DNA of 34,343 nt, taken from sequence record BK067790.1. One strand, given 5' to 3'. This document shows positions 4,024 to 32,922 of the stretch, piece after piece. Each line of letters begins with the position of its first letter. The first letter of the stretch is position 1. A model generated the notes under the pieces. The model did not search any database and was not told the origin of the DNA. It saw only the letters and a list, made by a program, of their open reading frames with translations. The position numbers and the translations under genes are program-made.

Positions 4024-4092
4024 GCCTAAAAAACTTATACTCTTTACTTTTTTAAATAACTTTAATAACCACACCCCACACTTTTAGTTAGC

Positions 4093-19067: not shown

Positions 19068-19234
19068 CCATACCAAAAAACATATATTATTATATATTAT
19101 TATTATAATCCTAGAGGCTAGAACCGTATTATAAGGGACACTCAGTCGGGTCTTATCCCCTCAGTCTAAAAGTACGGCAAGGTATATTGTACCTCATTGA
19201 TTGCCTCACAAACATTTTAATATAGAAAATTATA

Positions 19235-20071: not shown

Positions 20072-20163
20072 AGTGTAACTGCCTACCCTGCCAAAACGGC
20101 ACACATCAAGACAGACAATGTATCTATCGTTGCAACTGTACCCATGAGGCACATGAGAAATGA
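20068..20163 (+). CDS. Cys/His-rich micro-protein (31 aa)
   Basis: ATGA coupling at both ends; MKCNCLPCQNGTHQDRQCIYRCNCTHEAHEK*. Confidence 0.6.
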   Translation: MKCNCLPCQNGTHQDRQCIYRCNCTHEAHEK

Positions 20164-20261
20164 GTTGGTTTAACCTATCTGTAAACGCCAAGACCTGTAA
20201 AAGATGTAAGCAAAGAATTATGAATTATCCATGCATTGAATGTGGATTTAGGCATGATTAG
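20160..20261 (+). CDS. Zn-ribbon micro-protein (33 aa)
   Basis: MSWFNLSVNAKTCKRCKQRIMNYPCIECGFRHD*. Confidence 0.65.
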   Translation: MSWFNLSVNAKTCKRCKQRIMNYPCIECGFRHD

Positions 20262-20297
20262 TCACAAAAAATAGAATCTATTTTCAGATAATATCAA

Positions 20298-20324
20298 ACC
20301 CCTAGAGGGCTTCATTCTAGGGGT
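20298..20324. terminator. hairpin after the operon end
   Basis: ACCCCTAGA (20298-20306) / TCTAGGGGT (20316-20324), 9-bp perfect stem. Confidence 0.5.
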
Positions 20325-20466
20325 ACAAGGAATATTAACGCAATCTTAATACTCGAATTTAATTATTATATAACAAATTTAAACCTTGAAAGGTTTGGTT
20401 CGTGACGAATTTAATCTAATCAGCGAACTTGAATTGAATTTCAGTATATTGTATTTAAAATTAAAG

Positions 20467-20616
20467 TAAACTTACTTAGGTGTCCCATGATAATTACGGG
20501 ACACTTTTTCTCTATTAACTTTCTTAGAACTGATTTCCAACAAAGTTAATGATGAAATTGTGTCCCGTAAACTCATTATACTTTAAATAAAACACTGACT
20601 TACTTAGGTAAGTTTA
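20467..20616. repeat. nested inverted and direct repeats (origin- or operator-like)
   Basis: TAAACTTAC/GTAAGTTTA outer IR; TTACGGGACAC (20494-20504)/GTGTCCCGTAA (20560-20570); GTGTCCC at 20480; ACTTACTTAGGT direct repeat at 20470 and 20598. Confidence 0.8.
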
Positions 20617-20642
20617 TTAAATCAATAAAATATAGATAAATA

Positions 20643-20837
20643 TTGAAAGTAGTTAAGAATTATTCACTAAATGTTGAAGTGGTAAAGGCATTTGACGAAG
20701 AAGTTTCAGACCAAACAAGGTCAAGACTTATTGAAGCACTTATGATAAAATTCTTGGTTGAATATACTAGGGGTAATGAGGAAACCCCTAGTATTGACGA
20801 TTCCAGTCTTACCACAGAAAAGGAAGCGATACAATGA
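20643..20837 (+). CDS. ribbon-helix-helix regulator
   Basis: VVKNYSLNVEVVKAFDEEV...RSRLIEALMIKFL: RHH strand-helix-helix pattern; ATGA-coupled to the helicase. Confidence 0.75.
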   Translation: MKVVKNYSLNVEVVKAFDEEVSDQTRSRLIEALMIKFLVEYTRGNEETPSIDDSSLTTEKEAIQ

Positions 20838-22498
20838 CTTTAATCCCAGATGATAAAACTATTACGAATTGTGATTTTTGTCTTAAAGATGATTATGAAA
20901 ACTGTACCAAAGGGGGTCTGTGTCCAGCAAATCCTAACAAGCCACAGTTAAAGAAACTGATTTTATGTGACCATTGTAAAAATGGGGGTGACTGGAAGGC
21001 ACATGAGGAATGTGAGAAAAACTATATCGCCAATGGATTAAAGACATTTTGTCAATGCCCTAGTCTATCTCATGGAAGAAATGCCACGACTTCTATGGAA
21101 CCAGTTTCTTTTATGGACAAGATAAAGTTTGATTCTCAGACTTTGGAAACCGTAAAACATGAGCATAAGGACAGAATTGATATTATTGCAACAAGACTTA
21201 TTGACAAATATAATTTTGTAACTGCTAGAGAAACAGACACTATCTACTACTTTAATGGTAAGATATATGATTCCAAAAACTGTGAGTCAGTAATCAAACA
21301 GGAAACCGAAATACAGATTGTTGAATGTACCAAGTCAGACAAGGCTGAAGTCATTGACAAGATAAAGTCAAGAACCTATGAAAGCCTAGACCATTTTGAC
21401 AAGGACATTGAAAGCCTAGTAGTGCAAAACGGTGTATTGAGTTTACAGACAATGGAATTAAGCCCACATACCCCCCTTAATTTGGCAAAAGTTTTGTTGC
21501 CTTTGAATTACGTCAAGCCTGAGTTTGAAATTGATATAGACGATTTGTTTAATTCCTTAAAGTCAAATCTCAAAGATACTTTGTTTTGGAAATTTTTGGA
21601 AACTTCTTTTACGCATGAGTACAAAGCTGATGAGGAATCAATGCTTTCAGTTTTGGAAATGATGGCTTCGACAATTATTAGAAAACAAATTGACGAAAGA
21701 AGTTTTATTATGCTAGGCAACGGTGCTAACGGAAAGTCAGTATGTCTTGACTATCTTTCTGCCATACTTGGCAGGGACAATGTTTCTCATATTCCGTTAC
21801 AGGTTTTGGCTGAAGATAAATTTGCCAGTGCAAGACTTGACGGAAAACACGCAAATATATTTTCTGACTTGGAAAGAAATGAGCTGTACCATACTGGTAT
21901 CATCAAGGACTTGTCTTCAGGCGAACCAGTTCATGCACAACAAAAAAACAAGAACGGTTTTGACCTGTACCCTTTTGCCACTTTGGTATTTTCATGTAAC
22001 AAGTTTCCCAGAGTCTTTGACCAGTCACAGGGATTTTTCAGACGTTGGATTTTGGTAAAGTGGGAAAGAAATTTTGAGAAAGACCCACAGAAAAATGACA
22101 ACTTGAAAAAGGAACTGCTGGAAAAGACAGAAGAAATGGACTTGGTTTTCTCATGTCTTTGTCATGTTGCAAAGAAACTTTATGACTCAAACAGATTTAC
22201 AAATCCTAAAGACTGGAAGACAGTTCAGAAATTATGGAATGAAAATTCTGACCCTTTGAACTGGTTTGTCGAGAACCATATCATTGATTCAAACGGAAGC
22301 CGTTCAAAGCGTGACACATATCAGTTTTACAAAAAAATAATGTTTGAAAAGGGCGAAGTCCCTTTGGGTATGGGTAAATTTAGCAAGGCATTTTCAGAAT
22401 ACTATGAGGATTCAAAGTCAGATCACGAAAGAATTTGGCTTAACATTGAGTTTAGGGAACCACAACAAACAACGTTAGAGGAAAGTGACAAAACATGA
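20834..22498 (+). CDS. D5-like superfamily 3 replicative helicase with N-terminal Cys/His clusters
   Basis: Walker A GNGANGKS, Walker B ANIFSD, motif B IKDLSSGEPV..QQKNK..F, motif C FSCN, GFFRRW; D5_N-like region; C-terminal wHTH-like FSKAF. Confidence 0.9.
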   Translation: MTLIPDDKTITNCDFCLKDDYENCTKGGLCPANPNKPQLKKLILCDHCKNGGDWKAHEECEKNYIANGLKTFCQCPSLSHGRNATTSMEPVSFMDKIKFDSQTLETVKHEHKDRIDIIATRLIDKYNFVTARETDTIYYFNGKIYDSKNCESVIKQETEIQIVECTKSDKAEVIDKIKSRTYESLDHFDKDIESLVVQNGVLSLQTMELSPHTPLNLAKVLLPLNYVKPEFEIDIDDLFNSLKSNLKDTLFWKFLETSFTHEYKADEESMLSVLEMMASTIIRKQIDERSFIMLGNGANGKSVCLDYLSAILGRDNVSHIPLQVLAEDKFASARLDGKHANIFSDLERNELYHTGIIKDLSSGEPVHAQQKNKNGFDLYPFATLVFSCNKFPRVFDQSQGFFRRWILVKWERNFEKDPQKNDNLKKELLEKTEEMDLVFSCLCHVAKKLYDSNRFTNPKDWKTVQKLWNENSDPLNWFVENHIIDSNGSRSKRDTYQFYKKIMFEKGEVPLGMGKFSKAFSEYYEDSKSDHERIWLNIEFREPQQTTLEESDKT

Positions 22499-32211: not shown

Positions 32212-32260
32212 GATTAGTATAGAAACGTATAGTTAATTAACTTTTCAGTCGTTACTTATA

Positions 32261-32820
32261 CCCCCCCTATTTCCAGTCCAGTCATAAAATTAGACTTTGT
32301 ATTTTCTAAAAATATCATGGTATTTTTTCGGAAGTACATCAATTTAATCAAATTACCATATCATTTTTTGATAAAGTCCATGTCAATATTATTTTAGTAA
32401 TTGGTTTAGATTTCTTAACTTCTAAATTATGTTTTACAGATAACCAAACTTTGAACCCCAAATAGTCACAAATCAATAAAATCAATCAATTTCATTTCTA
32501 TTGTCTAATATTGATAATAGCATGGGCTTCTCTATATATGGGCGTGGGTGTGCCTGATACATATTAGCCATAAGGTGCGATTTTCAAAATCCTGTATAGA
32601 TTAGTTATTTTTGAAAATAAAAAAAATTTAATCAACTTTCTTTAATCATTCTGTCAAGTATTATTATTTTGACTGGAAATATAGGTGCTATATAAAAAGC
32701 CTAGTGCACAGTCTGGACTGGAAATATAGGTGGCATGATTTCAATATTTCATAACTGGAGTGGAAACAAGGGGGGTTTATATTATGACTAAGCCCACGAC
32801 TGGAGTGGAAATGGGGGTTT
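32261..32820. promoter_or_regulatory. candidate replication origin: ORB-like repeats with G-strings flanking an AT-rich tract
   Basis: Four (C/G)TGGAAA-core repeats on + (cores at 32674, 32719, 32761, 32806; spacing 45/42/45) and one inverted copy at 32261-32283; AT-rich 32290-32670 between them. Confidence 0.6.
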
Positions 32821-32922
32821 TTTTGGACTCACCAATTCTTATCGGGTCTAAGCCATGCAACGGACTTTTATGTACAAAATCTTATAACAGTCCATTTATG
32901 TACAAAGTTAGGGTGATATGCT

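Follow-up and report, generated by a model that had tools for sequence, protein, structure and literature searches.

A candidate helicase-cognate origin and a candidate operator lie side by side upstream of the RHH-helicase operon of a Nitrosopumilaceae spindle-shaped virus

The DNA analysed here (the window, 34,343 bases; BK067790, version BK067790.1) is the complete genome of Nitrosopumilaceae spindle-shaped virus isolate NMM1, taken to be circular because its IMG/VR entry carries direct terminal repeats. Its hosts are marine ammonia-oxidising archaea, which are abundant and genetically hard to handle. NMM1 belongs to a group of eleven genomes placed in the proposed family Nipumfusiviridae by the paper describing them. 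That paper does not discuss origins, operators or helicases, and no report of a replication origin or operator in Nipumfusiviridae was found in the literature.

An intergenic gap of 571 bp (20072-20642), initially put at about 380 bp, separates the annotated genes ORF19, encoding a PAPS-reductase-like protein, and ORF20. ORF20 (20643..20837, plus strand) encodes a 64-amino-acid ribbon-helix-helix (RHH)-like protein and starts with TTG in NMM1, the position being occupied by ATG or GTG in relatives. Its 3' end overlaps (20834-20837) the start of ORF21 (20834..22498, plus strand), which encodes a 554-amino-acid SF3 helicase with D5_N and DUF5906 domains and a predicted C-terminal winged helix. 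The gap also contains an unannotated micro-ORF of 33 amino acids (20160-20261, plus strand) with the zinc-ribbon pattern CxxC...CxxC (MSWFNLSVNAKTCKRCKQRIMNYPCIECGFRHD); its DNA is kept in two of the metagenomic loci described below (L034 and L041), and similar Cys-rich micro-ORFs stand ahead of the gap in NYM1 and NBC1. Downstream of the micro-ORF is a hairpin (20298-20324, ACCCCTAGA/TCTAGGGGT) that may be terminator-like or protein-binding; the same place in NMP1 reads CGATAGA/TCTATCG, which amounts to two compensatory pair changes. This hairpin and a second one at 20381-20396 had both been proposed earlier, and both exist.

The segment 20467-20616 had been described in the initial annotation as a single nested palindrome, and the repeats listed for it are all present in NMM1. 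The outer inverted repeat (TAAACTTAC at 20467, GTAAGTTTA at 20608) can be extended to arms of 15 nt that are 87% complementary. The middle one is an exact 11-mer (TTACGGGACAC at 20494-20504, GTGTCCCGTAA at 20560-20570) that extends to 36-nt arms at 81%, and a third GTGTCCC lies at 20480. A 12-bp direct repeat, ACTTACTTAGGT, occurs at 20470 and 20598 with no further copies genome-wide. The inner pair TTAACT/AGTTAA is likewise present in NMM1 but is not conserved in relatives.

Judged on NMM1 alone, the exact repeats are only moderately unusual. When the 383-bp gap was shuffled 3000 times with dinucleotides preserved, a direct repeat of 12 bp or more arose in 2.5% of the shuffles, an inverted repeat of 11 bp or more in 9%, and the two together in 0.17%. 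Folded as single-stranded DNA, the 150 nt gave a z-score of -5.4, with equally good folds in none of 200 shuffles. The clustering of GTGTCCC is stronger evidence than the exact repeats: three of the four copies in the genome lie within 87 bp (P about 1e-4), and the array holds all three copies in NMH1, all three in NMP1 and three of five in NMJ1. The fourth NMM1 copy, at 19135, is missing in NMH1 and NMP1 and was taken as chance. Conservation, a check that the initial annotation had asked for, was examined in 62 metagenomic loci and five related virus genomes, and the element is conserved among relatives; together with the clustering, this makes the element solid.

The metagenomic loci came from a scan with an alignment of the RHH-like protein, and from each the small ORF, 450 nt of upstream DNA and the downstream ORF were collected. 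Clustering of the downstream helicases gave an NMM1 type, H1 (20 loci, 75 to 100% identity), and the types H2, H3, H4, H6, H11, H12 and more; homologues of the RHH-like protein thus occur in family members with other helicases. Seen across these loci, the outer repeat consists of an RHH-linked palindrome (site D) and a partial copy of it fused to the first GTGTCCC box (site A), while the middle repeat and the third GTGTCCC form a set of helicase-linked boxes. Both functions first proposed for the region, origin and operator, find comparative support, but they fall to separate sub-elements and not to one nested palindrome. Hence 20467-20616 is probably two control elements side by side, within what would be the control centre of the virus replication module.

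Reading towards the operon, an upstream module (20381..20471, plus strand) comprises the hairpin AAACCTTGAAAGGTTT (20381-20396), an 11-bp palindrome TTCGTGACGAA (20399-20409), TATTTAAAATT (20452-20462) and GTAAAC (20466-20471). It is common to loci with H1, H6 and H2 helicases and to both types of RHH described below. In these loci the palindrome has the form TTCGT(G/C)ACGAA and is followed by an invariant TATTTAAxATT-N3-GTAAAC that ends exactly where the exchanged array starts; possible roles of the module are those of a second promoter directed into the array, a site for a host factor or a recombination junction.

Site A (20470..20481, plus strand; ACTTACTTAGGT) has 12 of the 16 bases of the RHH-linked palindrome and overlaps box 1 by two bases. 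In H1 loci its sequence TACTTAGGTGTCCC is invariant and travels with box 1 where 48 to 68 bp are inserted after it. The three boxes are candidate helicase-linked iterons: box 1 (20480..20490, plus strand; GTGTCCCATGA), box 2 (20494..20504, minus strand; GTGTCCCGTAA on that strand) and box 3 (20560..20570, plus strand; GTGTCCCGTAA). The distance of box 1 from the other two varies among H1 loci. Box 2 is invariant and lies about -146 from the RHH start in most of them (-143 to -147), and at about -166 in those with insertions. Box 3 is also invariant, its start lying 60 to 63 bp from that of box 2 in all H1 loci. The AT-rich spacer between boxes 2 and 3 (20505..20559; 55 bp, 24% GC) is a candidate unwinding region. 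Across 11 distinct H1 spacers it measures 53 to 56 bp with 20 to 25% GC, in comparison with about 36% for the genome; its sequence has been rewritten in L025, L030 and L027, where the inner repeats of the initial annotation are gone.

A variable linker separates box 3 from site D (20598..20613), the palindrome ACTTAC-TTAG-GTAAGT, which is the candidate RHH operator. Directly adjoining site D is the TATA-like box of the operon (20613..20622, plus strand; TTTATTAAAT), whose centre is about 26 bp 5' of the RHH start codon, and a box of the TTTATTAA/TTTAATAA type stands at about the same distance from the start in nearly all loci. A promoter is therefore placed, provisionally, at 20613-20622, and the RHH-helicase mRNA may be leaderless. 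RNA data (two metatranscriptome runs and one uncertain run) yielded only sparse contigs of relatives, over parts of the ORF19, RHH and helicase genes; they revealed no start sites, and none covered 20474-20607, at a coverage too thin for that absence to carry weight. A DNA run available as raw reads contained no reads from the stretch. The least stable DNA flanks the array, at 20425-20475 and 20575-20675 (lowest 0.1 to 0.8% of the genome), the former being among the least stable 0.8% of 50-bp windows.

Across 13 distinct H1 loci there is no change in the boxes or in site D, and the spacer varies in sequence with its length maintained. An alignment of four viruses shows almost no variation between AAACTTACTTAGGTGTCCC (site A) and the start codon, in contrast to the divergent DNA immediately upstream, which in NMJ1 is unrelated. 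NMJ1 (L006, about 4040-4090), L035, L038 and L040 carry the insertion of 48 to 68 bp between boxes 1 and 2; it has a small hairpin of its own (TTCTCAGAACTGAGAA) and a run of C, and it splits the box 1/box 2 palindrome with all boxes kept. A different arrangement is seen in L041-L043, where about 230 nt separate an operator-like word and a TATA-like box from the RHH gene downstream, and an extra ORF of about 70 amino acids, containing Cys and His, stands between promoter and RHH gene.

The array follows the helicase. GTGTCCC in the order + - + occurs in all H1 loci for which sufficient upstream sequence is available, and in none of the non-H1 loci. At the same place the other loci have arrays of other words: AACGTCAG, two direct then two inverted copies, in L041-L043 and L062; AACGTAGC in L046, L048, L054 and L073; AACGTTCG in L045; AAACGTC in L034; AACGTAC, six copies in two opposed groups, in L077; AAACGTCGAAACG in L079; and TGTACGGTT, again in + - + order, in L071 (= NBC1). 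Helicase cluster and array word correspond without exception, so that the repeats change with the helicase.

The clearest case is L034, whose RHH differs from that of an H1 locus at two of the first 44 residues, and which has an H6 helicase and no GTGTCCC. Its DNA homology to NMM1 is lost exactly at 20480-20596 and 20838-22494 and is retained at 20383-20479, at 20597-20837 (85% identity) and from 22495 onwards; the pattern in L041 is identical. Array and helicase gene therefore appear to have been exchanged, as two pieces, around a retained segment made up of site D, the promoter and the RHH gene. Such changes are frequent: the RHH tree requires at least 14 changes of helicase type, with L034 and L041/L043 nested at separate points inside the H1 clade. 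The converse case is that of L041 and L062, which have the AACGTCAG array and an H2 helicase in common despite RHHs that are only 48% identical.

These exchanges bear on the proposal that all 150 bp form an operator array used only by the RHH, the second option of the initial annotation. RHH proteins commonly bind several repeats, and sites A and D share 12 bases and bracket the element. However, L034 and L041-L043 keep the RHH ribbon and site D, yet unrelated arrays replace the GTGTCCC segment, and the boxes are missing from all non-H1 loci, even where the N-terminus of the RHH is identical. An array serving only the RHH is thus highly improbable.

The array could instead be bound by another viral or host factor, or be merely co-inherited with the helicase through linked recombination junctions, with no direct contact between the two. 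Conserved sequences that could channel recombination do flank both exchanged segments (GTAAAC, site D, 20797-20825 and the start of ORF22). Against this, the retained segment of about 240 bp separates array from helicase, and the perfect pairing over at least two separate swaps, and over four RHH clades for H2, would need selection for the pair, which makes this explanation quite unlikely. One of these junctions has a peculiarity of its own: at 20797-20825, the 3' end of the RHH gene, 29 nt are 100% identical to L062, the proteins being about 56% identical overall, and the tail motif SSLTTEKE encoded there recurs across RHH types. These 29 nt probably form the left-hand junction of the cassette, or a signal that couples the overlapping start of the helicase gene. 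An attP reading of the region was set aside, as the integrase gene is 4 kb away and the array follows the helicase type.

Among the helicases themselves, H2, H3, H6, H11 and H12 group as a single superfamily whichever of the three protein parts is compared, with conservation lowest in the C-terminal part, and their words have an ACGT core. H1 shares only the SF3 core with that superfamily, at 20 to 33% identity. Within the H2 helicases no segment clearly tracks AACGTCAG versus AACGTAGC. H1-like helicases whose C-terminal domains are 49 to 63% identical occur in integrase-bearing elements (L082-L086, one of them in an NCBI genome assembly), in which no RHH gene, no GTGTCCC and no convincing array was found. 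A profile scan of genome contigs with the RHH revealed no provirus copy. A 17-mer match in IMG/VR (L009) was discarded as chance, since it lies inside a coding region of an unrelated virus.

An array with so much self-complementarity could in principle act as an RNA or single-stranded DNA structure, for example as a 5' leader whose box 2 switches between pairing with box 1 and pairing with box 3, or as the target of an antisense RNA, to control helicase expression. Strong hairpin potential is maintained in relatives (z from -3.7 to -11.2), box 2 has two possible partners, box 1 (12-nt arms, 83%) and box 3 (11 of 11), and about 26 bp ahead of box 1 there is an invariant TATA-like word (20452-20462). 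The comparative record argues the other way: an Rfam search gave only chance-level matches, compensatory pairs numbered 2 of 25, and the covariation term was +0.46 (spacer hairpin). Furthermore, the arrays of other types consist of tandem 8-bp words in several copies over at most 200 bp (L077 and L079), which suits iterons bound by protein and not one hairpin. A role as a folded nucleic acid is accordingly very unlikely.

The protein most probably linked to site D is that encoded by ORF20. The AlphaFold2 (AF2) model of ORF20 has an extended N-terminus followed by helices at residues 11-20 and 23-43. Modelled as a homodimer, it forms an antiparallel ribbon through residues 3-9 with a score of 0.38 (best control 0.00); no less than 96% of contacts recur between runs, and the pLDDT of the partner does not fall below 73. 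Of 30 solved homodimers, 21 attained the mark used for dimer models; of 23 solved single chains, none did. Residue 4 contacts residues 7-9, 5 contacts 7, 6 contacts 6 and 33 contacts 33, so that residue 6 lies on the dyad. The predicted dimer has ribbon-helix-helix architecture, which would set an Asn or Thr residue over the centre of a bound palindrome. The initial assignment of ORF20 to the RHH proteins fits the predicted topology and the dimer model, but is not backed by a family match: no significant match was obtained in Pfam, in PDB sequences (profile search), with Foldseek or with VIA-align, atlas leads were weak (VapB, RHH_1 and RHH_6), and hhalign showed no similarity between ORF20 and pRN1 ORF56.

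Site D does not vary among H1 loci, and L034 has kept it in place despite its different helicase. More widely, of 34 distinct loci with Asn at residue 6 (N-Y-S at residues 6-8), 28 carry TAGGTAAG, across at least eight helicase types, whereas none of 10 with Thr at this residue does; the word either adjoins the TATA-like box or lies between that box and the start codon. At that position 8 of the 10 Thr6 (T-Y-S) loci have palindromes of the CGTACGTA type. The two palindrome classes, CTTACCT|AGGTAAG and CTTACGT|ACGTAAG, differ in one symmetric base pair near the centre. Asn6 goes with AGGTAAG and Thr6 with ACGTA-type words with no crossovers, although the tree gives only one independent contrast; a single evolutionary event may lie behind the correlation, which is suggestive. 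Site D is the likely autoregulatory operator of ORF20. The two-stranded ribbon of the ORF20 dimer would read the central CTTAGG of site D and, once bound, would block access of TBP and TFB, so that the operon would limit its own expression in the manner of the copy-control proteins of the CopG/ORF56 type.

For the GTGTCCC array the candidate partner is the helicase. The closest solved relative of ORF21 is PriRep5 of SaPI5 (7OLA; E = 2.8e-15 over query residues 287-539), and no primase domain was detected in ORF21 by domain search. Residues 420-554 were folded with 25 homologues, and the last 65 ordered residues show the element order H-S-H-H-S-S of a winged helix with pLDDT of about 91. The best fold matches of this C-terminal model were the winged helices of RFX, the AsfvPrimPol C-terminus and Cdc6/ORC, all with E > 0.001. 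ORF21 could thus plausibly bind DNA specifically.

The array is most likely, on comparative grounds, a helicase-cognate origin at which the SF3 helicase loads; this reading is favoured because PriRep5 loads itself on opposed iterons with an AT-rich region. The C-terminal winged helix of ORF21 would recognise the three GTGTCCC boxes, two helicase rings could assemble on the facing boxes 2 and 3, and the DNA would open either within the spacer or at the highly unstable flanks, giving a self-loading, helicase-cognate origin. The fusion of site A to box 1 raises the purely speculative possibility that the RHH gates access to the origin. The evidence covers the repeats, their conservation and the protein that each follows in evolution; from these we infer binding, repression and initiation.

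Several observations speak against an origin here. GC skew, proposed earlier as a check, does not turn at 20.5 kb but only where gene orientation switches, and a candidate origin with ORB-like boxes is already present at 32.2 to 32.8 kb. SaPIs and pRN1 place the origin downstream of the rep gene, whereas the array is upstream. Priming is also left unexplained, because the H1 helicase has no detectable primase domain.

Some of the same observations would fit binding of the helicase, or of another product of the exchanged cassette, for transcriptional control, with replication starting only at the ORB-like region. Rep proteins of iteron plasmids autoregulate at repeats near their own promoters, and the array is upstream of the operon promoter; besides the silence of the skew at 20.5 kb, the ORB-like candidate is common to relatives with another helicase type. 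However, the boxes are 45 to 135 bp upstream of the TATA-like box, which is outside the usual archaeal repression window, opposed boxes with an AT-rich spacer of fixed length are the origin layout described for PriRep5, and a virus-encoded replicative helicase needs its own loading site. Transcriptional control as the sole function of the array is thus unlikely, and a helicase-cognate origin is preferred.

The ORB-like region (32240-32840) contains GACTGGAAATATAGGTG twice, ACTGGAGTGGAAACAAGGGGGG, ACTGGAGTGGAAATGGGGG and an inverted copy at 32262, and sits at a divergent gene switch. It is conserved at 83% in NMP1 and partly in NMH1 and NMJ1, and short matches to ORB-like boxes are found in NBC1, which has another helicase type. 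No ORB or mini-ORB boxes with G-strings occur within 20467-20616. Two types of origin in one genome, as first suggested, are plausible. Only tentatively can one go on to propose two systems, an ORB origin served by host Orc1/Cdc6 and a private origin for the self-loading helicase, with the RHH as the switch between them: bound to site D it would stop helicase synthesis, and bound to site A it would block helicase loading.

The combination of a repressor, an initiator helicase and an iteron origin is a kind of system already well known. NMM1 shows three features of iteron origins of self-loading SF3 helicases (SaPI Rep, P4 alpha and pRN1 ORF904), namely a helicase with a predicted winged helix, inverted short words around an AT-rich stretch, and repeats that appear cognate to the helicase; it also has the operator layout of RHH regulators of the CopG/ORF56 type, with a palindrome at the regulator's own putative promoter.

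The SF3 helicase of SaPI5, PriRep5 (PDB 7OLA/7OM0), loads itself on opposed iterons around an AT-rich region. Like ORF21, the SaPI Rep/PriRep proteins are SF3 helicases with a C-terminal winged helix, and in both systems short cognate words in opposite orientation and an AT-rich region adjoin the helicase gene, with the specificity of repeats and helicase matched. The SaPI origin, however, lies downstream of the rep gene and has many iterons over about 300 bp, whereas the NMM1 array lies upstream of the operon and has three boxes of 7 to 11 bp within about 90 bp. In addition, the NMM1 helicase has no recognisable primase domain, the host is an archaeon, and the RHH gene and its operator sit between array and helicase gene.

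The minimal replicon of pRN1 comprises the repressor gene orf56, orf904 (an SF3 helicase with a winged helix), a promoter and a putative origin that is palindromic and about 100 nt long. As in NMM1, the pRN family of Sulfolobales has a small repressor gene upstream of, and overlapping, an SF3-helicase/winged-helix gene in one operon; there the promoter is essential, and a further likeness is the palindromic putative origin of about 100 nt with a poorly conserved interior. In contrast to NMM1, the pRN1 origin lies downstream of orf904 and ORF904 carries a prim-pol domain. The ends of the NMM1 palindrome, unlike those of pRN1, are invariant boxes that switch with helicase type.

In plasmids of the pMV158 type, an RHH dimer (CopG/RepB system) binds a short palindrome at its own promoter and co-regulates the downstream replication gene. 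The NMM1 RHH dimer would similarly read the palindrome at its own promoter and co-regulate the helicase gene. The promoter context in NMM1, however, is archaeal (BRE/TATA), no antisense RNA is evident, and the replication protein is a helicase, whereas that of CopG/RepB is a rolling-circle nickase.

SF3 helicases of polyomaviruses and papillomaviruses (large T antigen, E1/E2) recognise inverted short words flanked by AT-rich DNA, and papillomaviruses have a second dimeric DNA-binding protein with sites beside those of the helicase. Their DNA-binding domains have no homology to those of NMM1. A specific protein-protein partnership like that of E2 is disfavoured because helicases swap frequently around a constant RHH.

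The locus represents a natural swap experiment: an origin-like array and a helicase have been traded jointly, each as its own piece, on either side of a retained regulator, and this split-cassette co-exchange is a clean example of the evolution of cognate replication modules. It yields predictions at the level of bases, with words of 7 to 11 bp for the helicase and a 16-bp palindrome for the small protein, and a predicted swap of specificity through a single residue and base pair. If the two-system proposal is true, the RHH switch would decide between quiet carriage and burst replication, and origin and helicase would form an exchangeable two-piece cassette, traded within the virus family around a fixed RHH/promoter core.
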